Shown: positions 34,841-55,302, counted from the stretch's first letter. The stretch: 64,000 bases of DNA from Thalia democratica (GCA_965202585.1 OZ241833.1:23746001-23810000); one strand, 5' to 3'. Numbers and translations: made by a program. Notes: a model not told the origin generated them from the sequence alone.

Positions 34841-37800
34841 CTAAATTAAAAAGTGAATATGAGTTAAAAATACGAGTCAGTTAAAACATTGTTCAAAACA
34901 CGAGTTAAAGTAAAGTTAAAAAATTTGCAGTTGTCAAAGTTGTGCAACTGTAATTATTTAACATGTATTTTATGCTTGCACCTTAGTTTGTTGAATTTTG
35001 TAAAGCTTTAAAACTCTTACCATGTCTTTACCGCTCCAAACAGATCCGTTCGAGTTGATAGCCATGTCTGCGCAACTGTCTTCGCTCGCCTCCACAATTG
35101 AGCTTCTGTCTGTTTGTTTGGATTTTTTGGCGAACACATCACCGGAGCTGTAACCGTAAACCTGAAGGAAACATCGAATAGTTAGACTTGAGAAAGAAAT
35201 CAAAACTTTGAAAAAGGCTTAAAAACATAAATTTTATATGGAGTTTGCTTTATAACAAATAGACGAAATGTTTGGTCAATAGTCCGCGTAAAACATCCAA
35301 GTGTTTTATAGATTAAGTCTTTTGACAGTTAGAATCTAAGGACAAAAAAGATAAAAGACTTACCTTGTTGTCTGATGTGCTCTCAATTGATTGAATAGGC
35401 ATGTGATGGAACTGAACTTTTTTGCTCACAAGGTTGCTTTGAACTTGGCTCGACTAAAGAAAGATAAAAAAATAAAGTTAAAAAACAAATAGACAAACAA
35501 GTTCCTTAAAAAATACTATGCAATTGTGGTTGTTTTTTGTTTGTTTTAACGCTATAAACAATGTAATTTACTTTTTTTAAAGTATAAACTTTATTAATAT
35601 TTTTACAAAATAAGAATTACCATTGGGTTAGATCCGCACATGTCACAGGACAAATGGAGGATTACTTGCTGAGATCCGGCTCTGAAAGGAAGCTTGCTTG
35701 CAAAATTAATCGCATCAACTCCGTTGGCTGATACATCGTTTGAACTCAAGTCTATTCTTCTGATCACTTTAGATATGTCACCCTGTTTGAAGTTGAAATG
35801 TTATTTTTGTGTAAAGTACTACGTTTATTTTTATATTGTTTTTACACAGCTAGATTCAAGCAAAGGTTTTACATAGTAGCTAATTTGAAAATGTTAATTT
35901 ATAGCAGGTCAACACCAAGTATTTTTTTAAAAAGTTTATTTTTCAGAAAATTACAACTTTTGTAACTAATGTCAAGTCATTTTACAATAACTTTCAACCT
36001 TTAATGTTAGTCTTTATCTCAGCATTGAAAATATGGCTCGCTATTTATTGATTTAAAAAGTTTAAACTTACTCTTCTGCTAGATGAAATCTTTCCTCTCA
36101 TAGTGAATGAATGAGGCTCATTGTTGGCACCTGGACCTCCATACCCAACAACATAATATTTAGTGTTTGGTAATTCCACAGATGAGAAAGACTGTGAAGA
36201 CTGCTTCAAGAATTTTCTCAAAAACTTGCTCAAAGAGCGAGAGTGCTTTCTAAAGAAAAAAAATGTATGTTTAAGTATTTAAATGAACACTAACAAACAA
36301 AACATAAAAGTTATATGTAACTTAATAAGAAAACTTTAAAATAGAAAAGAAACGAGTCAAATTTAAATTTAACAATTAAAATATTTTACCAAACAAAATA
36401 GTTTCAAAAAAGGTAAGCTATTTGAGTATATTAAGTAAAAATTGAAGCAAATAATTGTGTAAACAGATCTTTAAATCAATTTAGGTTGTCTATTTATATA
36501 GATTTTTAAAGTTTTCAAAAACCTTAGACAGCTGGATTCTTGAATGACAAGTACAACGTCAACTGATCCAGTTTCCGCCTTAGTTGATTCTCCAACTGCA
36601 AGCGACATTCCTGTAGATTCATCAATACACCTCAAGCAGTCGTTTGGCATAGCAATATCCACGCCTTGCAGCTTACAAGTGAGCTGGTAGGCCTTAGCAA
36701 CGTTGCACATCTGGGCAGCTTCGACATGGCACATTTCTTCAAAGGCAGCTGCAGAAACAACAGGGAAGCAAGACACAAATGGAGATGTCATAGAAGTAAA
36801 GAGTGATGAGCAGGCACTTGATGGTTCCGAAGTGTACCTCACCGTGCTAGCAGACATACACATTGACGATGTAACCTGTTTACGTTTTAGTTTTTTGTTA
36901 GTAAATACATACTTTTAGCTGTTTATACAAAATAGATCTAAAGTCTACAAACATTAAATGTTCGATTTTAAAGTTATTGTAGAAGTGTTTTTCGTTTATG
37001 TTTATAGTTTATTGTTTTACTAGTACACAAACAAAGTAAAACTTGTATAATTGTTTTTTCTCAAAACAAAAGAATAATTTTTACCTCCCAAGATCTCGCA
37101 AAGTCTTCAACACTTCTCTCCAGTTCACCGTCGGGATTGACAAAGTCGAAGGCTGGCTCGTTATCGAAGACACCGAGAAGACCTCCAGTTGAAGCAAAGT
37201 AGAACGGATTGATTTCAACAGAAAGTAGACCAGTATTTTTGTGGTATTCAACATTCAGGTCATCGTTGAATGTCAGTTTGATTACGCTACCAACTTGTTT
37301 GACGTTCTGTAATAATAATAATTCTTTAAATTTTATGTAAACAACTTAAAACTAAAACATTTTTTTTATCAAAGTAACTGTTTCTTAACTACTCAAGAAT
37401 AAAATAATTGTAATCAAGACAGTAAAACTATTGTATATAATAAATTGTAAATTTAATAAGAAAGATTTTTGTGTACAGTTATTATTAGTATATTAAATAT
37501 CAAAACTTACAAGTCCCTTTTCTGAAATGATTGGAAGAATAGCATTTTGGTTGTTGTACGCTACATTTCCATTAGAGGTAATGATAACGCTTTCACTTCC
37601 GATTCTAATATCGTAGGACGGTGTATCTTCTTTGTAGTTGATAAGGATGGTGAAGTTTCCACTGCTACCATCAGTTGCTAGTATGTGGCTACTTTCACAA
37701 TCACTCTCAAAGTCAAAGTGACGTCCATCAAAAGTACGGAAGTTCTTAAAGTCCGATACAAATGCTCGTCCCTATTTAAAACAACCATAAGCCATTAATA

Positions 37801-40800
37801 AGATAGAACTACTTTTATTGAGACGAAAAATAGTTATAGAAAAATTTGAACTGTTGTTTTTTTACTTAACAAAAAATTAATAAACCTTGAATGGAGGAAT
37901 GTGCTCGATGATTGGCAAGTTCAAGAACGCCTTGGCTCTGTAGTAGTTGTTCACGTAAAGCTGCACGACCGGCACGAACTTGGTGAGTTGATCGATCATC
38001 GCGGTGTCTCTCACCCACTCATTGATGTTCGACGGCTCAGGTGAGCTCAAAAAGTCGACGTCGGTCAGCTGTAAAAAAATTTGCTCGCCATCAAATTCGT
38101 TTTCTCTACCAGCTGTATTTACGGTCAATGACTTTTTAAAACTCACAAATTCGACGTTAAATAAAAATGATATTTTAAAGTTTTTGCTGAAAACCAAAAA
38201 AAAATTGTGCTTTTAAATTTTTATAACGTTTTTTACTTAAACATAATTTGCACGAAATATACTTTCATTAATTTAATCACCGACCTTGATAGAGAGCGGA
38301 ATCGTGATAACAACGTTGTCGTTCGTCACAAGCACCAAGTCTTCCAACGGAATGCGAATCAGCTTGAACATGTCGCTGATGCAGCTTGAGACGTACTCTC
38401 CAGCTCTCTCCACTCCGTCTTCGATGATTTCAACCATGACGTCGCCAGCGTTGAAGCAATCGAGAGCCAGCTTGACTGCGTTGAGCTTTTCCTTGATCAC
38501 TTGGTTTATGCTTTCAACCGTTTGTGACTTGTAGTGCTCAATGACGCTGTCCAGCGGTTGTGCCAAGAAGTTGTTGAGAACTTCGATGTAGCTAAGGAGA
38601 TCAACAACAGTTTCTTTTACGAGCTCTCTAAGATCTGATTCTGACTCTTCAACAGTGTCCAAAAGATCACTCACATATTCTTGACTTTGATCTTTCATGT
38701 TGTTAACTAATAAGACCATCTTTTTGAAAACGACCAGGACGTTTTCGTCGACTTGATTGCTTCCAGATACGAAGCTTGAAATCGAGTTCACAATATCAAT
38801 GACGTTGTTAGCAAAACTTTCGGTGTAAGTGTCAAATCTGGCTGTAACCACGCTCAATACATTTTTGAAGAAGCTTGAAAACTCTGGGTTGGCGTTCAAC
38901 TCGATCTTTATGAATTTTTCGTCTACGATGCTGATGACAGCTTCTGCTATTTGAGTTTCAACGTCGGATAAAGTACTAGACAAAGTCAAACTTGCCTTGT
39001 TTTCGTTGACGGCTGCTGCAAGGTTCAAGGTGAAAACACCTTGACTTCCAGAGTCAACTCCTACAAATGCAACGAAACTTTGGCTGCTTTCCTCAACTCC
39101 GTACAACAGTTTTACATCTGAAATACTTTCCTTCAAAAGGTTGTGCACTATGTTGCTGATCTCGCTGAGAATTTGTTTCGCGTCAACGGTAACAGATACA
39201 GGAGCTTTACCAGGTTGCAACCAAGTCAGCGAGATTGTTCCGTCTTCAGTGTTGTAAATGGTATCCAGCTCCCAGTTTTCGTTGTCAGCTCCCTTGACGT
39301 TTGTCAACGATGCTTTGAATCCCTTTTCTTGTCCTTCCTGGACGATCACAAAAGAAGCTTGGAACTCAGTTTCAGTTGACGGGCAGTGGACTTCAACGGA
39401 GAAGGCGTTGTTGGCGACGCTGTACTTGCTTTCGAACAAGGGACTTTCCATTGTTGAGCACTCGACGACGAGCGAACCGTCAAACGAATCCGATCCCTTC
39501 TTCCAGCTCTTTCTGACGGAGACGGGCGCTTGGAGGAACTCGTTGTCGAAGGTGGTCGTCACTCTTACGCCGTTGCGCCTCTGCAGCACGTTGACCTGCA
39601 TCTCGTTGCGCTTCGGCAGCTGCACTCCGAAAAGGCTGACGTCGTGGGGATGCGCGACCTCCACGCCCATGTCGAAGCGGTCGGTCCTGGAAGAGCTGGC
39701 CGCGTTCGTTTTCACGGCGAGCTTGTACTGGTCGAACTCGTCCACGGTGAGCGTGTAGCTGCACGACGGGTAGGAGAAGTCGCCCGCTTGCCACGCGCTC
39801 AACACCAAAGAACGAACGTTGAAGAACTCGGACAGCGGTCCCGTTCGAATGACGCTTTCGGTTGTGTAGTTGTAGCTCGTCGGAGTGTCGTCGCGCGTCA
39901 TTTTCATTCCGAACACCACGGCTGGGTAGCTGTTGATCTGGACAGATGTTTTGGTGTCCACCATGTTTTCGTTGGATGCGAATCCGTTTTCAAAGTCAAA
40001 GTAAACTGGTTTGCTGAGATAGTAGTAGAAAGGCAGCGCTGAAACGAACTTAGCTTTAACCTTATAGCCTTCGCTGTTTTGTTTGAGGCTGAAAGAGCTT
40101 TCAATTTTAGTATAGCCCTTATCCTCAAATGCAACTGCTAACGCAGGATTTCTCAAATCGAAAGTAGTGTTCAAGGAAACCAAAAATTTACCACGAATTA
40201 CATATGGAACGTAACGAAATTGTACCACAGAAGTCATTTCTCCTGTCTCATCGTTGTAGCCAAAGTTTATTAAAACAGCATCACGGTTTTTCACTTGAGC
40301 AGTTATTTTTGTTTCAAACGCATTTTCGTTTTCATGTTCTACACCGTAACTTAAATAAAACAATTCATCGGAAATTCCATCGGTTTCTTCGTTAATGACC
40401 AACTTCCATCCTTCCTCGAAAGGTTGAACGCTTGCTGTATATTTCTTGTTTTCTGTTCTGTATTCTAAACCATACCTGTCTTGATCTACGTTTTCTAGTG
40501 TGTACACACTTACACGGCCACCGTATCCATAATGGACAATGATACGTTCACTATAACTTAGATTTATTTCCGATTCAATGCCGTTGAACTTTGTTTCAAC
40601 GTAAGTATCGGAAACGTTCGCTTTAATCATGACATCCAAGTTTACTAGTTCAGAGTTTACATTAATAATAGCTGTTCTTGAGTCTTCGGAGCTATCGTAT
40701 GAAACTGAAGATGCAAAGTCAAAGGTGTACAGTGTTCTAATTATTCTAAGAGGTCCATTAACATTAACTGAAGTAGCAAAGTGACCTAGGTCAAATTCTG

Positions 40801-43800
40801 TGACAGCCTCAAAGGTGAAATTTTTGTTGATGTTTCCAGTTGTTTGAATACCATTTTCAATGCTAGTAAGTTCTACTTCGAAGTTATAGATTCTTGGGAT
40901 GTCTAGCATGCAGGATACTTTATTTTCAGAAGTTTCAAACTTGAAAATTTCATCTTCATCCGCTTGCAGAAGAATAGAAGTATAAGGTGTTCGGGTATAC
41001 TTAAAATTGACAGTGTCTTGATAAATGAACGGTAAGTTTTTAGCTTCAAGGGTGACTTTTGTGCCTGAAACTTCAGCATCAGCTGACATAGGTATTCCAT
41101 ATCTTACTAAAGCTGCTTTGGCAACATAACTATCTGAATCGTGTACATAGTTTATTTCCATGTCTCCTTCTACGTATTTTCCGAAGTTAGTTGAAGACTT
41201 AAACGACTCGAGGAAACCGTTGACATCATTTTCTAGGTAAAAGTCAAAACTTACGTCACTGTTCGGTATAAAGCTTTGTTTAAGCAGAAGCTTGTAGTCC
41301 AGTGATTTTTCGTCGATGTAAAAAGTTGACTGCATGTCTACGCTGGAATCATCCGTCGAAACCTTCAATGAGTGGGAGTTTTTGTTGGTGTCCTCATCGT
41401 ATGAAGCAGTGTACGACAACTTGTAGTTTTGCGGGTAGTCTCTTACTCGTCTGGGTAAGTCGAGCTCCACGTTCACACTTCCGTGTTTTGCTTCAAAAAC
41501 GAAAAGTGACTGTTTGTTTAAGTCGACCTCAAAAGAAGCTTCTGCTACGTAGCCTTGATAAGTAGCGTATTTGGGGACGGCATCTATTTTCATGTCGAAA
41601 AACTTAACTACCATAGGGTAACTGTACTGGTAGACTTTGTACATAGAATCTTCAACTTCATCAGTGCTTGTAATTTCTCCGAGGTTAAAAGCGAATGCGT
41701 TCTCTTCGTTGACAGTGTATTCGACCTTGAGAGCCGCAGGGTGGTTGTTGTAATAAAAGTTAAAGTCGTTGACTTCCGAATCTCCGAGTTTGAAGTTCAC
41801 CTTGAGCTCAGCGCTTTCTCGTTTTTTGATCATGAGCGAACCGGTGAAGTAGTTGTTTTTGTCATGCTGAGAGCCTTCGCTGAAGTTCACTTCGTAAGTG
41901 GTGGAAAGGTCGTCGTTGGCTTTGTTGCCCGACAGCACGACCAGCCTTCGCTCGCCGTTGTAGTTTTCCGTGATGCTGAGCTTGGCTTCTTGCGAGTTTG
42001 ACTCGGAATCGGCCGTGAGCGCGTACCTCATGTAGTTGCCGTTGTTGACGGCAGCTTCAAGCCTTCGGTAGTAGTCGTACAGTTTGAAGCTGACGGTAGA
42101 CGTCGTTGACGGATCGATGAACTCTCTCAAAAACTCGTTGTTGTGGTTGAAGTCGAGTTTGAAAGCGACGGAGCCTTGTTCGTGGTTGACGTTGTAGAAC
42201 GATCGAACGTTGTAGTACATGTCGTTCACGCTGTAACGCCCGGTAAAGTTTTTAGAAGCCATGTCTAAACCAGCGTCAAAGTTAAGGTTTAGTGGGGTTG
42301 TGTAGTGAGTTACAAAGTTGTTGACACTCACAACTATTCTCGGTGTTTCTGAAAAGACGTCGTAATCGAAGCTAATGACAGACTCACCTTGCTTTTTAGT
42401 TGTGAATCTTAAGTCAAAGTTTCCGAAATTTCTGTTGAGACGAGTTGTTAAAGAAACAGCGGTTGGTACATACATTTCTAGTTCAGGAATGCTGTGAGAT
42501 AGGCTGAGAGTGGAATCGCTGTTTTCGTAAGTAAGAGTTCTTTCATCGCTGTCAATTTTCAATGAAACTTCAAAATCTCTTGAAGAACCTCTGAAAGATA
42601 GTGAGACCGTACTGGGGAAGTCTTTGAGCTCAGGGAGTTCTTGTCTTGCTGTATAAATGTGGTTTTCAGTGTCAAAGTCAAAGCTTATCAGTCTTTTAAC
42701 GTCGTCAACTGAAACTGAAAGTTCACCGTTTGTTGTCGGCAAGAGTCCACCGGTGACACGCACCTCTACGTCATAAGGTATGAAGTATGGAGTCAGTGCT
42801 TCGAAGTTGTGCTGGAAGCTCAATGTACGGTTTTCAACATCGACGGCTGCGTTCAGCGATCCTCTGAATTCGCTGACCAAAACCGTCAAGTCCGCTTGAT
42901 AAGGAGACTCGAGGAAAACTTTAGTAGAAAGGCCGAGCGGAGAATAAATCATGGAACCCGAGCGGAAAATGTTGTGCTCAATATTGATATCAAAATCGAA
43001 ATTTCCCTGCATGTCTGTTTTCCTGCTGGTCTTTACGATCAAAAACAGGTCGTTAAAGTTAAGCGTGAGCTCTACATCAGCCAAGCTCTTGTATTCAACT
43101 TGAACGTTCATTGATTTAGGAATGAAGTCAATTGGAAGATCGTGTTCCAGTGAAAATTTAAGCTGCTTAACGTCAGCTTCAACGGTCAGTGTGCGGGTAT
43201 TCTCGTCGAGTTTCAAAGAAGATGTCATCTTAGGATTTTCGTACCCTCCCTCGAAAGAAGCTTCGAACGAAGCTGACTTGGGGATTTCGTCGACGATGCT
43301 TTGCTCGACCGTGACAGAAATGCTTCCCTGTTCAGCAGCGAGCGAGCCGATGAGCTCAAGCGCATTTTCTCCGTTCAGCTCAACGCTCAAAACACTTTCG
43401 CTTGCGGACGGTTTGAAGGAAATAGCAACGGTCGACGCTTTTCCTTTCACAACCTCGATGTCAACATTAACTTCGTTGTCTGGAGACTTTGTTAGCTTAA
43501 AGCTCAGTTCTGAAGGCAGAACTTCAGTTTCAAAAAGCTGGTGGATTTTTAAGTCTACCTCATCAACGGTGATTAAGCCCTGCACAGAAGCGTGTTTCTC
43601 TCCGTTTATTAGCAGCTTTATTTCGTTGTCTTCTTTGTTAAATGAAAACTCGGCTTGACTTTCAAAGTTTAGTCTCGCTGATTTGATATCTGCAGAAGCC
43701 TTGAGCTTTGGTATTGGACCTAATTCAAAAGCTACTGACGCTGTCTCTTCGCCGTAAGACGCAGCTAGAGAGGCAGATGTTTCTCCTACACCGTAGTTAC

Positions 43801-46800
43801 TAACGAATTTAAATCCCATCGAGTTTGGAATGTCCATAGCGTTTAGAAGCGAGTTTTCATGTACAAAGGATGCACTAAAAATTAAGTCGGAAGGCGAATA
43901 TCTCTTGTATAAGTTCAAAGTGTGAGAAAGTACTTCTTCACCAAAAGTGACGTTGGCGCTGATCAAAACGCTGCCTCTATCACATTCACCGAACATACGT
44001 CCTTGCAGATAGTTTGGAACTTCGTAGGCCTCTAGCTCCTCGATATCGTGAGACAAAGATCCTGACACAGTAACAGATTTATCGGTGAGTTCCCAGCCGA
44101 GGTTCAAAGCGACGGTGTTTTGAACATCGTCTCTGTTGAAGACCAGAGTAAGGTCTTTTCCGTCTAATTGCGCTTCAGCCCTCAAACTGAACGGAACTTG
44201 TAAGCTCTTCCATTGCTCATTGTCGTGTTTCAACTCTGCATAGACGACTTTCTCATCACTGTTTATACCGTTTTTGAAAACAAAAGTCAAATCATCCGAG
44301 GTTGTTACTTCCATTGTGGTGTCTATCACAAGAGGCTTGTTGGCATCACCGTTGTAAGTCATAGTTATTGAAATGTCTTCTAACAAATCCGGATTCCATT
44401 CTTGTTTCAACTCTGCATTGATGACGTGAGTGTAGGAACTGTCCTCTCTCTCGGTTACAAGATCTGCATCGAAGTTTACCATAGTTTTTCTTCCAAGTAT
44501 GAACTTGTACGACACCTGAGGATCGACAGTGTCTACTTTACCGGACAACTTTACTCTTCTAGGGAAGTTCGGAGAATCTTTGACAAAGCTTTGAGTCATT
44601 GCAAATTCTGTCGCGTAGAGGCCGTCTTCAGCTTCAATTTCGTAGCCAATTTTAGCGTCTTTGTTGTCCACGCTCAGACGAACTCCTGCTTTCAACCAGT
44701 TTTCTTCCCTAAATATCTTTACCTTCATTTTTTTAGGAAGATATTCTGCAAACAAAGATTGTTCGTGCTTGTAAATAATTTCAGTAAATTGGGAGATAGA
44801 ATCTCCATCGTAGCTGAGTTCAATTTCGACTTCTTCTTCTCTTTCTCCCCACAGACCGGTCGCAGTAAGGAAGAATTCCGAGGGCAACAACTCATACTTT
44901 CCTTCAATTCCCATCACAGTCGGGATTCCGTACTCTTCCAAGATGACGAAACTGTGTTCAACTTTGAAGATGAGCTTTTTGGAAGCGGTGATGAAGTCGA
45001 AAGTCACGTCAATGCTTTTTCTTTCCGTGTCGTACAGCACGCTGATGTCGAAGTCGGATCCGGTTTGAACAACTTTGACAGACATGTTCGCAGGAACACC
45101 GTAATCGAGCATTAGACCAACGTTGTGTTCAAGCGAAGTGTAGAACGAACTGTCGTACGGGTTTTTGGTCAACGCAAAAGCCACGTGCTGCTTTTCCTGC
45201 CCGTAAGTCCAACGAAGCGTAATTGACTTGTAAACAATGTCTGATTGCTCATCGGATCCTGAAATGTCGATGCCATAGCTGAAGTTCTTTGGCAGCCACT
45301 CTTCTTCGAAATCGTGCTCTCCTCCAAGCTGGAAGTTCCAGTTGAACAACTCAGCTCTCAAAGAAATTTCAGCGTTGTTAACAAAAGTAACGTCTTCTGC
45401 GTTGAGCCTAGGGTACTTTCTTGTGACTGTCGTTACGAGTTTTGTTTGAGTCGACGCGTCGTTAAGATTGAGATGAATCAAGTTTCGTGACTCGAGCTGA
45501 ACAAACGACGGAACCTTCAAAAACATTCCGGTTTCTGGGTTGTTGAGATTGTTTTCAACAGTAATGACAAGTATGTAGTTGTCATCATACAGTTGCGGAG
45601 CTACTTTAATAGAAGCAGTGTATGGTCTCAAACCATCCGTATCTAGAGATCCAGAAATTTGTGTGTACTGTCTGGGAACATTCTTGAACTCAATACCTAG
45701 ATCGAAGTTCGGCTCGCCCATTGAATAGGCGACAATACCGCTATTTACTCTTGCACTCGTTGTGAGAACTCCTTCGCTAGTAATTTTTAAACCAGCATCT
45801 AGGCTTAGGCAAAGAACATCTCTCACATGACCCAGATTTAGAGATGCTGCAAGGTATCTTGTGCTGCTAAAAGAAGAAGCTTCTAGATTAAAGCTTATAT
45901 CTTTTGGAATATAGAGACTATCATAGTCGTTACTGTATGTATATTCGTACAATTCTGTAGAAAGACCCACTTTATCGTTGTAAGAAGGTTTTCCAATAAC
46001 CATTCTTAGTTTTTCATTATGGACCGGTCCATCGTCACCTTTGTAAGACGACACATATTCGTTGGTGTACGCGTCAACAGTAATAAAAGACGTGTTCACT
46101 TCTAAGTTAGTGTAAAACTGAGCAAAGATGTTTTGATAGTACTTATCTTGGAATCTAAACTCGTTAGGTTGAGGATAAAATCTTGTTTGTTCGTGCACAT
46201 ACTTGTATTCATCGTACTGTACGATCATCAAGCTTTTCACGTCACCAATCGAAAACTTGAAAGAAAGTACTTGTGGCAACAGTTCATTGAAGTTTTGGTT
46301 GAACACGATGTTTAACTTGGTGAACGGGTTTGCATCTAGATCGAAAACTGCCGTGGCGAGTTTATCGTTTGCTTTACTTTCGAGTATGATAAGCGAGGGC
46401 TCAAACTTGAATTTAAGATTGTATTTTCCGTACATTATTTCGCAGTCTGAAGAATAATCAATGAGCATATCCACATAGTAAGGGGAAGTAATAGTGTGGT
46501 GGAAGTCAACCGAGGTTGTTGATTCGTTCCAAACAAGTTTCAGGCTTTGGGTCGACTGATCGTCAGCTTTTCCAAAAAGTTGGTAAACTTGGTCCTGATA
46601 CTGGACTTTAAAATTAAACAAACCCATGTATCCTTCTACGTTTTCAATATTAAACTGATTTGTGTCAACATCAACACCTGCAATAACTTGGACATTTGCT
46701 GGGTCCAAATTAACAGCTACTTTAGTGTGGGGTATGTCTGCACCTACTATTTGTTTATCTCCGCCAAGAACAGCTACGCAGTAAGGATACTTGTCTGTGT

Positions 46801-49800
46801 TCTCACAATGTGCATCGAGAAAAACCTGTTCCTCGTTTATTTCCAAAGCAGTGGAAAGTTTGTTGTTTTCAGAATCTAGCTCAACCAATAATGAAGTTTG
46901 TCTTGGAACAACAGCAAACTGCGGGATGTCGTTGCTTAAAGTAGCAACAAATCTGCCTTCGCCGATTTCGACTTTCGTTGAAATCTTTTTGTCATCAACA
47001 TTCATTTCTCCTTGAACTCCGTCAGAAGTTTTAGACAAAGTAACCGCGAAAGACTCTGGCAGTTCGTTAAACTTGTCGTTGTCTACCACAAACTCAATTT
47101 TGTCCGCTGCGTTTGTAATTTTAACCAGTATGACGTCAACGTAGTTAACTACGTACTTGTTATCTCCTATAGAAAGAATCATGCTGTTTTCTTCGGGTAT
47201 AAATTCAGTCAACATTTGGTTCATCGAAAGCGTTACTTCTTTGTTGTAGCTTTCGACGTTATCGTCATACGATAGACCGAATTCAAATGCCTTGCGGTTA
47301 TCTTGCTCGTAAAAAGAGTTAAATTTAATCATAGAACCTTCAGTAGTGTAAACCGTTTTAGCTTCAACATGTTGGAAGTAGGGCAATGCGGTGGTAGATA
47401 TTTCAATACCAGCTTCAAATCTCGAGTCCTCGTTGTTTTGGATGTTTGTGCTGTGGGTAGTAACTAGTTCAAAAAACCTGTTTTGACTCCACTGGTCGGC
47501 AAACTCAACCCTCGTTCTAAAGCGACTGCTTTTATCCAAGTTTTCTAAGTCAACATTAGCCGAGTACTTGTTACCTAAGGCCATGAACACTACTTCACTT
47601 TCAAACCCTTCTTCTGAAAACGAATGGTCCAAGTTTAGTATTGCCGGGTCTCTTATATAACTGGATCTCAGCGTGTTAGTGCTTGTGAAACCGTCTCCTG
47701 GGTAAGTGTGCACTGAACGTAAGTCCAAAATGATCTCGTCCCCTCCCCTTACCTGAACCTCAACGGCTTTTTTGTTGACAAGATTTTGTATTTGGGCGTT
47801 GGTGTCAAACTGCATGCCGCGACCGCCATCCAGTTTACCCGAAACTCTGTACACGCCTGCAGCCGTCTGCTGAATGTCGTTGATGAGCTTCAGCTTCAAC
47901 CAGGGCGTCGGGATGAGAAGAACCATCGACTTGTGCAGCAGGCCGTTTTCCTCGGTGCTATCTTGGAACAACACTTTCAAGTAATCGTCGTTGTCGACTG
48001 AGAGGCTCATCAGCACGTTTTCGGGGTCGAAAGCGAGTTTCCAGTCGAGCGACTTTCTGTAGTCGAGCTCGCTCAAGTCCAGCTGAAACTCTCCGCCGAC
48101 CGACGTTCTCGAGTCGGAGGATCCCTGCGTGCTGAAGACGTTTTTCACGCTCACGTACTTGCCGTTGCTCTTGTCCAGCGCGTTTTCTCCGTACGCGAAC
48201 GACGCCGTCGTGGTGACGGCTTCCTCGGTGACGGCGTTGTCGGTGCTGAACTGCGCGTTCAAGCTCGGGTACTGCGACGAGACGAACTTGAAAGCCATGC
48301 TCTGCTCCTCGTCGGATATCTTTCGCTTGTGCACGAACTTCACGCTGATAAAATGAATTTGTAATAAAACATTTCTTTCTTAAAAAAAGTACTTATTGTT
48401 TATATTATAAGCAAAAAATCAAAAAACCTTTCTTCGTCTTGACCCATTGTTGAGTATTTAAGAGTAGCCGCCCAGTTGTCTGGTTTGTTTTTGACATACA
48501 GCGCAACGTCTGCGCTGTTTTGGTAAACCCCCGGAATTGCAACTAGAGCGCCTCCTCTAACTAAGAATCGCTTGCCTCCTTCGTTTGATTCGTCGTAAAG
48601 ACCAACTAGAAAAAGTTGCTTGTAAATACAATTGTATAAATAAATTTTTAACTTTACTGATAAAAATAATTCGGTTTATCTATGAACAAATAACGTATTA
48701 CAAACCTTTGAATTCAACTGGCTCGCTTAGGAACCCGATGAAGGACGAGTTGAACGAAATGATCTCTGACGGTTTGTAAGCTCCGGCAACGTGAACTTCA
48801 AAATTTTCACCGAAACCAGTGGAAATGGTCGAGTCCAACTTCAAGCTCGGTGTTTCTTCGAGCGTACCGTCGACGAATGTAGTCTAAGTTACATATTTAT
48901 AAGCTAAGTAGATTAAACTTAAAAAAAAAATTAAGTTGTTTTCAAAACCAAGTACAAGGCGAATTTTAAATAACATAAAGTAATAAACATCAAAATAAAA
49001 CACGAGTCTACTAACTTTCATTAACTGTTGCTCAGTTCCATTGTTGTTCATGTTTACGACAACTTCATGACTGTTTCCAACTTTGTTAAACTGCGCGCTA
49101 AGCTCCTGGCTGAAAGTTTCTCTTCTTTCCCACGGATACGTGATCGATGACGTAAGCCTCCCTTCGTCTTTGCTCATCTCAAACCTCATCTGATGACGTA
49201 AGTTACTGTACTCGTCTGACGTATCAAACACGATGTCTCCCATCAAGTAGGCGGGCACGACGCTGTCTTCGTCAGCAACGTAGTCGTAGCTCATGTCCAA
49301 AGAGTAGTATTCGCGACCGGGTGCTGAGTTGAAGTATACCTGGTAGAACGTCACTCCGTTTTGAGGAAATAATGAGTTTTCTGAAGATTTTATTTCACAA
49401 ATTTCTTCACCAAGGAAAAGATCGAAGCAATTTCGTTGTACGTCAACGTCTTCATAGTAATAGTAACGATAATCATCAACTTCTTTAAACTGGTTTTCAA
49501 CCGTCTTAAGCTTGTGAGAAAACTTGAAAACAGGGAAGTAATGTTCTGGTGTTCCAATTCTCATAGAAAACCTTCTTGAGCTGGTTAAGTCAGCAACTGC
49601 AGAAAGCTTCCACGAGTTAAGAGCGCTAGATTCGGTTTGAATTCCTGTAGTTGTGATATGAGAATCAACTGTCATTGCTGCATTGAAAACGACTGATGCT
49701 CTCGGATAAAACTCTGCATTGACTGACAGCTTAGGACTTGTGCTTAGGAGAGCGCTTAGGTCCATTTTACCAGTTCCGTAAAAAGAAAGGTTGGCCGTTC

Positions 49801-52800
49801 CGTTAACTACCATTTTTAATGGTAGACCAATCATTGTTGGCAAAGTAACATCTGTGCTAATCAACATCATATCTTTGTGGTATCTGAACTCACGGCCACT
49901 AGCAATGTCACTGACAATAGATGACACTTCGTCATTTACCTGTTGGTAAAAATTTGGGTATTTGCTGTTTCCGTATTTCATTTCATTTCCAAACATTCTC
50001 ATGTACCAGGAAGCGCTGAACTGATCCTTTTGCACGTTTGACTTGTACTTGTTAGTGGCTGCTTTAACGTTTGAGTCAGAAGCGAAACTGTCTATTTCCT
50101 CATCTGCTTCGGCATTCTCATCTTCTTCCTCAGGCTCGTTGGAACCGAAAATTTTACCGATCCCGGTGTTTTGTAAGAAAGTTTTTTCTTTCATAATGTC
50201 TTGCAGAATATTCTCAACTCCTTCAACACGACCTCCAATTTCGAAAATGTTCACAGCTTGCCCGAACAGTTCAAGAGTTAGGTTTAGGGACGCAGCTCTT
50301 GGAACAAATGACTTTGGTGAAAAAACTATGTTGGCATCACCATTAATACCAGCATTGAGTACTTCCGAAAAGTAAGACGTTTCATAGTTGTGAGAGTATT
50401 TTCTTGGGTCGAGGTCGTGAACTTTCATAAACTCAGCTTCAACTAGGTACGGTTTAAGATAACCTTTGAGAGGATCGCTTGAAGAAATAAGATTTCTTAT
50501 GTGGGTTGATACAAAACTAGACATTTGCAAGCTAGGCTCATCATCCATCATTACAATGAGATTTGACATAAAGTTTGTAGTTGGGCACTTCATGCTGGTT
50601 AAGTATGCGTTTATGCGTATCTCTGAATCTTGGTTAGAATCAAAAACGAGATTTTCAAAAAACTTAGTGGATCCACAAGGCATTCTTCTCAGAGCTTGGA
50701 TGGCAGCAACCCTTGTTTCGACGTCGTTACGGTCTTCGGTTGCACAGGATGCAACAGTACTGACAGAGTTTGCGGTACCAGCGTTACCAATAGCTCTCAA
50801 TGCAAGAATTATTTCTTGCTTTCGTTGGTCGTTAGGTGTGAAGCAGTTGTTACCCAGCTTCTTTTCAAAAAAACTCAGGGCATCGTTTACTGAGGTATGT
50901 CTAATACAATTTTTTTGTGAGTTGCAGATTCCGTAAATAACTGATCCAGTTGTCAAGTATGATTCTTCCTTCAATCTACCAGATTCCAACACATCCTAAG
51001 AAAAATATTTATTAATATGATTATTAATTAGTTTTGTTGAAATAGTTTTTTATCATAGAAATTATTTATTTATACTTCTTTAGCAATTGAAGTACATATA
51101 GTCATGTTTATTATATCGCTCTAATCACAGCAATGACTAACTACGAGTCCTTCCAACATTATAGGTGTTGGGTTTGAAACCAAGTTGATGCTAATAAGCC
51201 AGTCAAGGGAAGCTGAATCGTCCAATACGCCTTGAGCAATCAGTTTCGCACCAAACTGCACACATCCTTCTTCGCCGCAGTACTTGAGTGCATCCGTGAA
51301 TACGTGCCTGATGAAAACAAAACTCTTTTAAATTGTATTTTCTTTAATTGTATAACTAGCTCTAGTTTGTGTTTTCAACTAAGCTAGCGTATCTTAAAAT
51401 ATGTGAAAATGTTTTTTGTGTGCACATTTTCAACTTTTACTAACTACATAAAATAGCTCTAAAAGCTCATACTTGATGACGTCATTATGAGTAGGACAAA
51501 CGCCTTCAAGTGATTCGTACGCTTGAGCGATTGCCGCACCATCCAATTGTCTCAAGTGATAAACCATATGATTGAACTTTCTGCTCATCTTATTGTAATC
51601 ATAGAAATGTTGATGGAGGAATTCACACATTTCAAAAAGGTAGCTTTTGATTTGAGAAATGTCATTTTGCTTTTCAGAGGTAGATTCTTCTTCGAATTTT
51701 AAATCACTTTGACGTGTTTTGTATCCGGAGTTAACTGTAATATTTTAGCTTATTCAAAAATTCTTAGTTTAACTGTTTACCAAAAAAAGATTTAAATAAA
51801 TATCAACTTAATTAAAATTTTATATGATAGCTGATTTTTGTTATATATTTGGACTTACTATTGTTAGACATGATTGGTTCTCTATCAACAAATTCAACAG
51901 TTTTAGTAGCACTAGTTCTAGCTCCGTTTTGTTCCGAGCTGAAAGGGCGGAACACGTGCTCTTCATGACAGTTTACTTCAGTAATGACGTCATTCTTGAT
52001 TGTTTGAACACACCTTTGTTCTTGGTGCATGAGACGCTGACGTTCCTAAAAATATATCGTTTTTGATGAACATTGATAAATTTATAAACAGTATATAAGT
52101 TAATGGCGTTTTAAAGAAAATTTAAAACAGGTTAAATTATTACAAAAAATAATTGTTATTTTTACTTTAAATTTTTAAGAAAGCTATAAAAGTTTTGTTT
52201 TACTGATATTTAATTTAACGCTCAAAAAAAACTATTTATTTTTAAATTTAGAAAAATTACAAAAAGCATACTGAATCGCTGTCGTAGGAAGTAAATTGAG
52301 AAAATAGCAGCATTTTACTCTGTTCTTGGCAAGTTTCAAATTGTTTAGTTTTAGTTACTTCCCTTGTGTTGGAATCCAAGTAGTTAACATCATAACTAGA
52401 TAAACATTCACCACTGATATCAGTCTAAACAAAAAATACTTGTGAGTAATTTTTATTTGTATTTTTCAATGTAATAAATTTGTTAAATGATAACATTACG
52501 TAAAATTAAGTAATAAGTCATTTTTTAGAAATATCTGAAAAATAGTATAACTAAAATAAGCTAAAATAGAATAAACAGCTCACTTCTTTGTACATTCCAG
52601 AATCATGGGACGAAGAACTCTGTAAGGAGGACAAAATACCCTTCTTAATGTTCAATGCCCACTCTGGGTCCTCGTTGGACGCACAAAGCTTACCAATTTT
52701 GCCATCATTGAAAGCATAGGTGAGAGACTCAAGTTGTAAAGTCCTCGACCAATCTAAATAGTCCAAATATGGCTGATCTGGATTGCTCATGTTTGCAAAC

Positions 52801-55302
52801 AATATCTGTGAAAGTTTAAAGCTTTAACAACTTGATGCCAACAGTTTTTAAATATATATTTATTAACTTACGCGCAATGTATGCTCACAAGGACTTATTA
52901 TGTCCAACGCACACTTGGCTTGGATTGTTACTTCACTGAGTTCATTGAAATTTTCTTTTGATTGAAAAAACGATGATTGGACATTTGCTCTGTAGTTGTA
53001 GTTGTAGGTGTAGCCAACTTCGTAGTTGAAGTTTGAGCTCAATGTTTCTAAAAATGTTTTTGGTCGATAAGTAATACATTGCGTAAGTACTTTCACATTT
53101 AAATGAAATATAAACTGAACTAAAAAACTTTAGTAACAGATTTTTATAAATGTAATAAATATGTTTACTAATCAAGTATGTTATTTAAATAGTTGTAACA
53201 AAATTATATTGAATTTCGTAAGAAATGTTTTGATTGCTTTAAAAAATGGTGTTTGTACATAAATTAGGTTTAGAATAACAAAAATGTAGAAATATTTTTA
53301 AAGCTTAAGATTTTGTATGACTGACCTGGACATGTTATTGAGCATTCTTTATCCACTGATTCTGTAAATTTTTAAAAATAGTATTAGTAAAAAAATTATA
53401 GACAAATGTTATAAAATCTCAAAATCTTTTTTGTAAAGTCAAGATATTTTAATATATTTCGACTATTTAATTAATGCTAAACTAATAAATACTCTATAGA
53501 AATGTCGCTATTAAAATACTTATAAACTTTTAAATAGATTTCATTTCTATATTGTTTTGCTCAAGTTTATTACGTTTTTTGTGGTTTTTATTTACATGAT
53601 ATTTCAAAATTTAAGCACAAGTTTGTTGAAGAGAACGAAAACTAATTAAGATAAATATTTTTTCATTTGTAATATTTGTTTTACGGCAGCGTTTTCTCTC
53701 ACAGCAACCTTTGCTCCGAACGCACTTTCAGATAAGCAAAAGTTCATATCTACGAAAAACAAACAGATGCGTCAAAACAAGTTTGATTTGCGATAACAAA
53801 ATAAACTTTGTTATTTGTGCAATTTTGAACTTAACCTTGTAAACATTCGTTTAATTATCAAATGTCATCAAATTTATTTTTATACAGTGTTTCAGTTATG
53901 AACAAAGTGTTATGAAATTTTTCAATCACCATAAACTTGTTTACAGAGCAAAGACCAAAACAACTGTAAGAAAAAACACAGTTGCAATTAAATTAGTTAT
54001 GTAAAATGGTTTTTGTTGATTTATATAAATTTTTAAAATATTTATTTTAAAATAATAGTCGAAATTATTTTTATGAGAAAAGTAATACTTTAGTTTAAAA
54101 ATAATTGTTTGTTATGATTTTTAATTTCCAGTAACATCATGATGTAATTGTTCAATAAAACAGCTGAATACAAATCTTACAAAAATTTAAATCTATCAAA
54201 TTTTTGCATATTGCTTAAAACAAGTCTGGTTTGCGAGTGAAAAACAATCTTTGATATTATTTTTTTGTATTTTTTAAACTTAAGCTTATAAACAATCATT
54301 TAATTGCTAAAACTCATCATTTTTAAGCTTATCTTTTAAACTAGACTTCATTATCAACTATATGTACAACTTTTAAAGACTCTCTTAAATGTTTTTAAAT
54401 AAAGCTAAAACATTAAAACATTACGACAAAGTTTAGCGATTTTAAGTTAATGTATTTTTTACACGCTTGTACTTTTTCTTTTTTTATTTTAGTTTTTGGT
54501 TGATATAAAAGTTTAAAGCTAAAACTCAAAAAATATATTTATAAGCTAGCTAGTTACTTAAATTTCTATTTTTTTTTTATGTTTCAGAGTAGTTGTATAT
54601 TTAGAAACTTTAATTTGAATTATTAAAACAAGCTGTCATTGTTTTAAGAAAAATAGCTAAAAAACAAAAACCCTTAGAATGCTATATATAAATATATATT
54701 AAAACTTTAAAAAGTTTCTGCAAACAAGTTTAATTTTCAAAAACAAAATAATAATTGATATTTGCGTAATTCTGAACCTAACCTTGTAAACAGTCGTTTA
54801 ATTACTAATTCTCATTAAAACATTTTTTTTTCTACGTACTTTAAAAAAAAAATATGTACAAACTTTATAACTTATATCTAAGGATTTTTTTTTTATTTAG
54901 AAAATAATAACTTCTAATTTTGACCTTTTTATTTACTAATTAAAAATATAAGTTTATAGCAGTAAAATTGAAACAGTTAACTTCTAAAACAAAAAAAGGG
55001 TATTCAATTTTTTTTTAGTTAGGTTTCACTTTAATTTAGTTAATTTTCTATAAAACTTAACAAATTATAAACATAAAACACTGAGTCTTCTACCCAAATA
55101 ATATTTAAAACATGTTTCAAATTTGTTGCAAAATATAAAAAAACATTAATTTTTTATAAAGTAAAACTTTAATCATGAAAGCTTAAGATAACTTAAAATT
55201 GTATATTTTACTTTAATAAATAAAAAAATGCTTACTGGCTAGCCCTCTACTTATTAGCACTCCTAAAACGAGTAGACTAATTGTTAAGGCGTGAACTCTC
55301 AT
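34712..55302 (-). CDS. Apolipophorin/apoB-type large lipid transfer protein (LLTP), ~5127 aa: signal peptide, lipoprotein N-terminal (Vitellogenin_N) domain, DUF1943-like region, long amphipathic beta region, helical cluster, VWD, Cys-rich and vWA-like C-terminus; gene-level model
   Basis: 21 phase-consistent exons: 55302-55236, 53361-53326, 53047-52872, 52805-52584, 52424-52272, 52045-51859, 51734-51473, 51307-51142, 50995-49016, 48883-48706, 48605-48428, 48344-38285, 38068-37886, 37771-37511, 37306-37085, 36875-36523, 36249-36072, 35782-35621, 35453-35364, 35161-35021, 34840-34712. They sum to 15384 nt (5128 codons). LLTP motifs: WALNIKKGILSSLQ, ETDISGEC, LRAIGNAG, RVAAIQALRR, SEIRINAYL, DPRKYSHNYE, FVPRAASLNLT, PTMIGLPL. 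VWD motifs: FRTFDGRHFDF..C and GGLLGVFDNEP..DF. Confidence 0.93.
35021..35161 (-). CDS. LLTP exon 20
   Basis: VYGYSSGDVF..DSCADMAINSNGSVWSGKDM|gtaaga. A weaker in-frame donor at 34982 is also possible. Confidence 0.85.
35364..35453 (-). CDS. LLTP exon 19
   Basis: SSQVQSNLVSKKVQFHHMPIQSIESTSDNK|gtaagt. Confidence 0.85.
35621..35782 (-). CDS. LLTP exon 18
   Basis: ..GVDAINFASKLPFRAGSQQVILHLSCDMC..|gtaatt. Confidence 0.9.
36072..36249 (-). CDS. LLTP exon 17
   Basis: ..NTKYYVVGYGGPG..EPHSFT.., phase 2-0. Confidence 0.9.
36523..36875 (-). CDS. LLTP exon 16 (C8-like Cys-rich segment plus start of vWA-like domain)
   Basis: ACSSLF..FVSCFPVV..FEEMC..CNVAKAYQLTC..VDVVLVIQESSCL. Confidence 0.9.
37085..37306 (-). 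CDS. LLTP exon 15 (VWD, C-part)
   Basis: ..INPFYFASTGGLLGVFDNEPAFDFVNPDG..SVEDFARSWE|gtaaaa. Confidence 0.92.
37511..37771 (-). CDS. LLTP exon 14 (VWD, N-part)
   Basis: GRAFVSDFKNFRTFDGRHFDFESDCESSHILATDGSSGNFTIL.. Confidence 0.92.
37886..38068 (-). CDS. LLTP exon 13
   Basis: LTDVDFLSSP..IIEHIPPFK|gtttat. Confidence 0.88.
38285..48344 (-). CDS. LLTP exon 12, giant 10,060-nt exon (amphipathic beta region plus helical cluster)
   Basis: Uninterrupted 3356-aa ORF; acceptor tatcag|c at 48345/48344; donor aag|gtcggt at 38285/38284. Confidence 0.93.
48428..48605 (-). CDS. LLTP exon 11
   Basis: GLYDESNEGGKRFLVRGG..GQDEE ag|gttttt, phase 1-2. Confidence 0.88.
48706..48883 (-). CDS. LLTP exon 10
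   Basis: TTFVDGTLEETPSLKL..PVEFK g|gtttgt. Confidence 0.88.
49016..50995 (-). CDS. LLTP exon 9 (1980 nt; alpha-helical domain plus DUF1943-like region)
   Basis: Core of ORF 48884-50992; ttag|DVLESG..QQLMK|gttagt. Confidence 0.93.
51142..51307 (-). CDS. LLTP exon 8
   Basis: HVFTDALKYCGEEGCV..PTPIMLEGLV|gttagt. Confidence 0.9.
51473..51734 (-). CDS. LLTP exon 7
   Basis: NSGYKTRQSDLKFE..KFNHMVYHLRQL.., phase 1-2. Confidence 0.9.
51859..52045 (-). CDS. LLTP exon 6
   Basis: ERQRLMHQEQRCVQTIKNDVITEVNCHEEHVFRPFS.. Confidence 0.9.
52272..52424 (-). CDS. LLTP exon 5
   Basis: TDISGECLSSYDV..VTKTKQFETC..DSDS|gtatgc. Confidence 0.9.
52584..52805 (-). CDS. LLTP exon 4
   Basis: ILFANM..EDPEWALNIKKGILSSLQ..YKE|gtgagc. 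Confidence 0.92.
52872..53047 (-). CDS. LLTP exon 3
   Basis: TLSSNFNYEVGYTYNYNYRANVQSS..SPCEHTLR|gtaagt. Confidence 0.9.
53326..53361 (-). CDS. LLTP exon 2 (36 nt)
   Basis: ttacag|KSVDKECSITCP g|gtcagt, phase 1-1. Confidence 0.8.
53819..54818. repeat. Pair of ~55-bp diverged direct repeats in LLTP intron 1 (53819-53873 and 54763-54818)
   Basis: tgaacttaaccttgtaaacattcgtttaatta versus tgaacctaaccttgtaaacagtcgtttaatta. Confidence 0.7.
55236..55302 (-). CDS. LLTP exon 1 (signal peptide)
   Basis: MRVHALTISLLVLGVLISRGLA a|gtaagc; phase 1 fits exon 2. Confidence 0.85.

Follow-up and report, generated by a model that had tools for sequence, protein, structure and literature searches.

ApoB-type belts were resolved at atomic level only in 2024, and descriptions present them as some 120 strands in a featureless succession, interrupted by inserts. 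In lipovitellin, lipid is enclosed in a cavity formed by sheets, and neither a long belt nor a repeat of the kind dealt with here is known from that protein. The apoB100 structure comprised 120 strands, on average 11 residues long, as well as nine large inserts, and a regular unit was not mentioned (PMC11839476). Arthropod apolipophorin-II/I and the crustacean dLp/HDL-BGBP display the order Vitellogenin_N, open beta-sheet domain and long beta region. The window analyzed in this work, a stretch of 64,000 nucleotides from Thalia democratica (GCA_965202585.1 OZ241833.1:23746001-23810000; positions are counted from its first letter), carries on its minus strand a gene that, judging from its domains, follows this same order and encodes a large lipid transfer protein (LLTP). 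As in apoB100, a long, continuous antiparallel amphipathic sheet is predicted after the Vitellogenin_N and open beta-sheet parts, and most of it is encoded by one giant exon. The middle of this exon was found to contain a repeat with a period of about 59 residues, and we confirmed that this repeat is real, conserved and present in no catalogue.

The repeat is marked by a connector motif that runs from His or Gln to a Pro. All 16 motif peptides quoted in a preliminary description of this DNA, which was made from the sequence alone, were located in the translation of window 38273-48343 (minus strand) where that description had placed them. Fourteen core copies occupied residues 1007-1965 (window 42449-45325), with outliers at residues 468 and 680. 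The positions of this list were therefore right, whereas three copies, missed or degenerate, had to be added at about residues 1311 (AELKQEWNP), 1540 (FELGPIPKLKA) and 1790 (IEHNIF...SPLGL), which brings the connectors to about 17, spaced on average by close to 59 residues. The array and its connectors were as follows, with the evidence in brackets.

42449..45325, minus strand: core repeat array, residues 1007-1965, ~17 connectors, ~68 strands predicted (motif, hhalign, AlphaFold2)
41594..47026, minus strand: wider zone, residues ~440-2250, with weaker matches (three-unit profile of residues 1042-1220 by hhalign, and outlier motifs)
45275..45325, minus strand: connector 1, GGEHDFEEEWLPKNFSY (His and Pro invariant in 7/7 family members)
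45077..45136, minus strand: connector 2, SLEHNVGLMLDYGVPANMSV (in the model His ends strand E67-74 and is followed by helix 77-81)
44906..44965, minus strand: connector 3, KVEHSFVILEEYGIPTVMGI (H, F and P invariant, 7/7)
44720..44770, minus strand: connector 4, KHEQSLFAEYLPKKMKV (motif, family alignment)
44546..44602, minus strand: connector 5, AMTQSFVKDSPNFPRRVKL (Gln kept in 6/7)
44372..44434, minus strand: connector 6, AELKQEWNPDLLEDI, overlooked in the preliminary description (canonical form in relatives, VQDFVENDVFP; 26-nt DNA match with connector 7)
44177..44236, minus strand: connector 7, ELKHDNEQWKSLQVPFSLRA (His 6/6)
44000..44059, minus strand: connector 8, SLSHDIEELEAYEVPNYLQG (His-Asp 6/6)
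43811..43870, minus strand: connector 9, SFVHENSLLNAMDIPNSMGF (motif, model, family alignment)
43685..43738, minus strand: degenerate connector, SVAFELGPIPKLKASADI, with His/Gln lost and the Pro tail retained (family alignment)
43499..43549, minus strand: connector, KIHQLFETEVLPSELSF (motif, family alignment)
43265..43312, minus strand: connector, TVEQSIVDEIPKSASF (motif, family alignment)
43103..43153, minus strand: connector, SLEHDLPIDFIPKSMNV (motif, family alignment)
42908..43084, minus strand: whole unit of 59 amino acids, residues 1754-1812, with its own connector, IEHNIFRSGSMIYSPLGL (a single-unit indel, without counterpart in the relatives P0001, P0002 and P0004)
42761..42820, minus strand: connector, SFQHNFEALTPYFIPYDVEV (motif, model, family alignment)
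42599..42652, minus strand: connector, TARQELPELKDFPSTVSL (motif, family alignment)
42449..42505, minus strand: connector, SLSHSIPELEMYVPTAVSL (motif, model, family alignment)
46889..46942, minus strand: outlying motif copy, TLSNDIPQFAVVPRQTSL (motif)
46259..46306, minus strand: outlying motif copy, VFNQNFNELLPQVLSF (motif, pattern count)

The motif was considerably enriched over shuffled sequences. The strict pattern of the preliminary description occurred nine times in the exon product, compared with 0.12 ± 0.37 times in 1000 local shuffles, and a core version of it 11 times (0.31 in local shuffles). As the pattern had been derived from this very protein, counts in other proteins provide the fairer test; five relatives and paralogues, 19-25% identical, contained 4 to 13 copies (relatives 8 to 13), in contrast with 0.4 or fewer in their shuffles and 0-2 in the reversed sequences, and the copies held the same alignment positions across relatives. 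Internal similarity, which had also been claimed, was present too in tests that took no account of the motif. In chunk-wise Smith-Waterman self-comparison the mean best local score reached z = 5.7 over the exon in its entirety and z = 7.9 over residues 960-2040 with respect to local shuffles. Models built with one unit left out detected 6 of 14 such units above the shuffle background. Comparison of a six-sequence alignment with itself by hhalign gave off-diagonal matches at shifts of about 63, 120, 243, 305, 363, and 425 residues, with scores from 255 to 127 (E 1e-29 to 5e-14), whereas scores were 13-17 for column-shuffled controls and 85 for forward against reversed, the latter control retaining composition, strand alternation and periodicity. 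A profile of three units (residues 1042-1220) produced weaker matches along the full-length alignment, from about residue 440 to about residue 2250. At the DNA level no repeat was visible, in agreement with the preliminary description, except for one direct repeat of 26 nt (window 44223-44248 and 44400-44425; 88% identical) whose spacing of 177 nt corresponds to one unit; it encodes AELK(H/Q), the beginning of the two adjacent connectors 6 and 7.

Two AlphaFold2 models were obtained, model 1 for residues 1000-1970 of the window protein (mean predicted local distance difference test, pLDDT, 51.6) and model 2 for the matching part of a paralogue that is about 22% identical to it (mean pLDDT 61.5). 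In both of them the unit consisted of four antiparallel strands, His/Gln stood at or beside the C-terminal end of a strand (in model 1, E124-133, E424-433, E487-498, and E841-846), and the motif Pro lay 2-3 residues ahead of the next strand. A helix of 4-6 residues followed His/Gln in 7 of the 13 connectors of model 1, so that only about half of the connectors are predicted to have the short helix proposed earlier as part of the motif. The 13 connectors previously listed delimit 12 intervals, which in model 1 contained 4, 4, an uncountable number, 7-8, 4, 4, 8, 6, 4, 8, 4, and 4 strands; pLDDT fell to 30-40 in the uncountable interval, and the value of 7-8 depends on whether one broken strand is counted once or twice. 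All ten clear counts were even, which by our own arithmetic would occur about once in 1,000 times if parity were random, and all connectors would thus share one edge of the sheet. The eight-strand intervals each held a degenerate or missed connector (at about 1311, 1540, and 1790). Model 2 offered two countable intervals, with four strands each.

In an alignment of 35 unit copies, apolar and polar residues alternated strictly over the four strands, and His/Gln, which ends strand 4, fell in the apolar phase. The next residue was Asn, Asp or Ser in 31 of the 35 copies, followed by a helix-like spacing of apolar residues and then by an apolar residue and Pro. The connectors were the most conserved positions of the belt: among seven family proteins, 19-38% identical, nine columns were invariant within residues 1000-1970, and seven of these were motif positions. 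His was present in 6/6 or 7/7 sequences in units 1, 3, 7, and 8. Gln took its place in several others, and in units 4 and 5 it is Gln that is conserved; the site was also occupied by Leu, Met, Val, and Asn. Histidine is a rare residue in this region (17 of 971 residues; residues 1000-1970, window 42434-45346), and 12 of the 17 stood at the motif site, at the end of the fourth strand. N-glycosylation sequons (N-x-T) were seen at the motif in two orthologous units of relatives and in none of the window protein, and were discarded as a general feature.

The preliminary description had proposed an apoB-type amphipathic beta-belt, and structural comparison of the model bore this out. The top Foldseek matches in the PDB were human apoB100 from low-density lipoprotein, 9E9R (3.8e-8) and 9EA7, with 9BDE also among the matches. 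With VIA-align, the only matches of low root-mean-square deviation (rmsd) were again apoB100 (9COO, Z 9.1, 3.7 Å over 171 residues; 9BDE, Z 7.1, 5.1 Å over 257 residues). Porins and LptD, which occupied the top VIA-align ranks, were rejected as generic meander matches, with rmsd values of 15-21 Å. Neighbors in the AlphaFold DB and the ESM Atlas were fragments of apolipophorin, BGBP and vitellogenin, and the nearest ESM Atlas clusters were eukaryotic proteins without names, one chordate cluster being partly annotated with PF21013. Strand length is also comparable, with about 8-12 residues here and a mean of 11 in apoB100. Neither a regular four-strand unit nor a His/Gln-helix-Pro connector is described in the apoB100 paper (PMC11839476), whereas both are predicted for the window protein.

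Repeats that Yang et al. defined in 1986 on human apoB, before its structure was available, reportedly included proline-containing amphipathic beta stretches; to our knowledge, they do not include any unit of four strands with a His/Gln-Asn/Asp...Pro connector. The report of internal repeats in apoB-100 dates from that year (Yang et al., Nature 323:738, as cited in PMC2873297). The only solved sequence match of the N-terminal module of the window gene was lamprey lipovitellin (1LSH, 6e-16), which shares with it this lipid-transfer module at the sequence level. The unit profile displayed no similarity to that N-terminal module, and thus there was no sign that the belt had been copied from the open beta-sheet domain; against PDB sequences the same profile gave only chance matches to nanobody frameworks (E > 0.1).

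Searches for named relatives came back mostly empty, a result of little weight. An exhaustive phmmer search yielded seven proteins, none of them named and all from marine metagenomes or metatranscriptomes. A word-indexed search returned one protein for residues 1000-1970, residues 1-700 and alignment A4 having no match in it, and a metagenome locus scan with a single protein gave no match. When the unit profile was run against the 802-Mb genome in six frames, it matched only three LLTP genes and a duplicate contig. On that contig (C941:2678-13259) lies a nearly identical copy of the window gene, which has the same Vitellogenin_N matches and unit scores; it probably represents a haplotype that was not collapsed in the assembly, and not a real duplicate. 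One of the two other genes lies about 51 kb beyond the end of the window on the opposite strand (C9:23861353-23868144, plus strand). Its giant exon of 2,264 codons is 40% identical overall and keeps units 1-5, and about 270 residues take the place of residues ~1275-2395, for which it has no equivalent. The third gene (C1:63109882-63116301, minus strand), used for model 2, has an exon of 2,140 codons with the same units and without residues ~1770-2270. It gave the best score with the unit profile; it was not itself in the training set, but P0006, 96% identical to it, was. P0006 was assembled from marine metagenomes and the gene is also 92% identical to a Tara-type metatranscriptome fragment, which indicates that the species or a close relative is common in ocean samples.

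Differences in belt length between relatives and paralogues, by one unit or by several, were therefore observed, as had been anticipated. The clearest was an indel of 59 residues (1754-1812) with its own motif, absent from P0001, P0002 and P0004; further indels clustered near 30 and 56-62 residues. Most units were nevertheless collinear in proteins only 19-25% identical, indicating that the array is old and its copy number mostly stable. Neighboring strands of a beta sheet are spaced by about 0.48 nm. As model 1 holds 68 strands in 971 residues, or about 14.3 residues per strand, one unit would add about 1.9 nm of belt, and the difference of about 850 residues between the two neighboring genes would amount to about 28 nm.

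Considering these results as a whole, we find it fairly probable, with some reserve, that the region is an apoB-type belt of units of about 59 residues with connectors that set register and cap the edge, growing by hairpin pairs and having originated by tandem duplication. The belt would be a continuous antiparallel amphipathic sheet, each unit contributing four strands (two hairpins) and one connector. Strand 4 would close with His or Gln in the phase of the apolar, lipid-facing residues; Asn, Asp or Ser would come next, at the N-cap position of a helix, and 7-11 residues would then form an amphipathic helix of one to two turns, or a loop, before a hydrophobic residue and Pro open strand 1 of the following unit. 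With an even number of strands between them, all connectors would lie along one edge of the belt, where they may set strand register and cap or anchor this edge at the boundary between lipid and water. The belt would have lengthened or shortened as pairs of hairpins were gained or lost, and the units most probably arose by an ancient tandem duplication that predated the divergence of the family members. Duplication is supported by the 59-residue indel with its own motif, by the other unit- and half-unit-sized indels and by the 26-nt match, and descent of the whole unit from one ancestor, plausible and unproven, is the most economical reading of the sequences.

Several results weigh against this proposal. 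After deletion of the motif columns, the best off-diagonal hhalign score was 136 compared with 121 for the reversed control, which indicates that nearly all of the directional signal came from the connector motif; what the strands add appears to be only a generic amphipathic pattern, with no sign of common ancestry. Recovery by leave-one-out hidden Markov models (HMMs) was partial, as 6 of the 14 left-out units scored above the best of 20 shuffled exons and the other eight were missed. No sequence match to apoB100 was obtained with the region or the unit profile among PDB sequences at E <= 10, and no Pfam family matched the unit or any of the eight aligned family segments; the earlier statement that the unit has no named domain agrees with these searches. 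Both models were built on alignments of 8-9 sequences and are of low confidence, their secondary structure being the trustworthy part. The orientation of His/Gln to the lipid-facing side would follow from sequence phase and not from coordinates, and the capping or anchoring role of the connectors is one that we infer. Thus, of the modular belt built by intra-exonic duplication that had been put forward, the modules are seen as four-strand units in the AlphaFold2 models, whereas intra-exonic duplication was not established.

The near equality of forward and reversed scores once the motif is removed, the pairwise identity of only 7-26% between units of the window protein and the eight units missed by the HMMs are what would be expected if the units had no common ancestor and a His/Gln-helix-Pro register connector, of a kind that any long amphipathic meander would need at intervals, had been selected repeatedly. 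We consider such convergence unlikely, although it is the most probable of the alternatives. Indels of unit size, one of them of 59 residues and with its own motif, argue against it, as does the 26-nt DNA match that adjacent units 6 and 7 share at a spacing of one unit. The motif, moreover, falls into two discrete length classes, the units share turn residues at matching positions (Asp-Asp/Asn following strand 2), and tandem duplication is the usual source of such arrays. That the pattern is an artefact of chance or composition in an amphipathic, beta-rich protein has practically no probability left: apolar/polar alternation alone does give self-similarity above simple shuffles (85-121 in the reversed controls), but this idea was refuted by motif counts of 9-13 in five independent proteins, by the forward score of 255 against 85 reversed, and by the conservation of motif positions across relatives.

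Regarding function, the preliminary description had suggested that His could act as a pH sensor through which endosomes or yolk granules release lipid, and that unit number could be a ruler by which particle circumference is tuned. Invariance of His in at least four units across proteins 19-25% identical, its concentration at the motif site, its placement in the lipid-facing phase at the belt edge and the different belt lengths of three paralogues in one genome all fit this proposal, and work on apoB truncations has established that core circumference scales with the length of apoB (Spring et al. 1992, ref. 33 of PMC11839476). The ruler is a reasonable idea, although not a new one, being an established concept for those truncations. 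Nevertheless, we regard the combined proposal as improbable. In many units His gives way to Gln, a residue that cannot titrate and that is conserved in units 4 and 5; together with Leu, Met, Val and Asn at the same site this indicates that a titratable group is not required everywhere; unit positions are also mostly collinear in the family, and hence copy number appears largely fixed and not tuned. It is very improbable that the connectors are docking or processing sites along one edge, serving for instance a receptor, a partner in lipid transfer, or a chaperone that acts during co-translational lipidation. The peak of conservation at the connectors, the basic residue (K or R) after Pro in 17 of the 35 copies and the placement on a single edge, which suits multivalent binding, would agree with docking. 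On the other side, the furin consensus R-x-K/R-R was absent from the two large exons checked (702 and 3,356 residues), the motif is mostly apolar and predicted to take part in sheet-helix packing, and we know of no partner. A broader extension of the belt proposal, in which the unit would be the ancestral block of LLTP belts at large, the three paralogues, with belts many units apart in length, would specify distinct size classes of lipoprotein, and the invariant interfacial His would sense pH or phospholipid head groups and so control loading or unloading, seems to us slightly less probable still than the pH sensor and ruler just discussed.

The remainder of the gene was traced from Pfam matches and base composition, and its parts were as follows.

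36474..53096, minus strand: LLTP gene as traced, with Vitellogenin_N exons, open beta-sheet exon, giant exon, VWD exons and C8-like exon (Pfam matches per exon; guanine-plus-cytosine (GC) content)
48884..50992, minus strand: exon with the end of Vitellogenin_N and the open beta-sheet domain (PF09172, 1.9e-51; PF01347, 2.1e-24)
38273..48343, minus strand: giant exon, with the beta-belt and then a C-terminal stretch that looks helical by eye (open reading frame list and translation; 3,356 stop-free codons)
37496..37771, minus strand: exon with the first VWD half (PF00094, 29.4 bits, cut-off 22.9, profile positions 7-96)
37064..37345, minus strand: exon with the second VWD half (PF00094, 29.0 bits, profile positions 94-155)
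36474..36914, minus strand: weak candidate C8 exon (PF08742, E 0.006-0.018, under its cut-off)

Consecutive parts of PF01347 were matched by the exons at 52866-53096, 52554-52802, 51815-52030, and 48884-50992, and the open beta-sheet domain PF09172 was nearly complete (profile positions 1-296 of 303). The VWD domain was split across two exons, both halves scoring above the cut-off. GC content was 36-46% over 38-52 kb compared with 21-25% in most of the flanking sequence. Because of the Vitellogenin_N and open beta-sheet exons upstream of the giant exon, and of VWD and the weak C8 downstream, the domain assignments identify the gene as that of a secreted LLTP with an apolipophorin-like domain order. 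A C-terminal VWD is common to apolipophorin and the window gene, whereas apoB has none, unlike this gene, which ends in VWD and the weak C8 (PMC8545670). In comparison with arthropod apolipophorin-II/I and crustacean dLp/HDL-BGBP (APO-type LLTPs), the window protein is larger, with 3,356 residues in a single exon, and has neither, in its two large exons, the furin site at which apolipophorin-II/I is divided into two apolipoproteins nor a detected DUF1081; this domain (PF06448) was not found in the giant exon at E <= 0.1, nor in eight aligned family segments at E <= 1.

Contigs from marine plankton RNA libraries spanned window positions 41000-46999 with 90-99% identity (at least 95% in most), without joints and with indels of 3 nt only. 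This indicated that the giant exon is uninterrupted and probably transcribed, the contigs leaving room for DNA contamination. The differences in length from the window consisted of one 3-nt insertion and one 3-nt deletion (45681, 45961), both in frame, which fits coding constraint in natural populations. The last ~300 residues of the giant exon (~3050-3356; window 38276-39196) appeared by eye as amphipathic helices and not as strands, and in this by-eye judgement they recall the helical C-terminal insert of apoB100.

The uncharacterized chordate LOC400499 family, PF21013, matched P0001 (residues 10-252, 1.4e-9) and P0004 (residues 5-226, 7e-6) at the start of the giant exon, equivalent to about window 47600-48340 and upstream of the repeat array. 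Of the members of the ESM Atlas clusters closest in features and in shape, 17-18% carried it; there was no match in the window protein and none was found in this genome. On these profile matches, PF21013 may be an unrecognized relative of LLTP beta-sheet regions.

The finding refines the known apoB-type belt and does not define a new kind of protein, and the known picture of what such proteins do is unchanged. If the proposal is true, a unit that can be read from sequence would provide a register for modeling other LLTP belts, would allow belt length to be counted from sequence, and would define the residues to mutate in order to learn how belts keep their shape on lipid. The occurrence of long- and short-belt paralogues in one animal constitutes a natural experiment on the relationship between belt length and particle size outside vertebrates.

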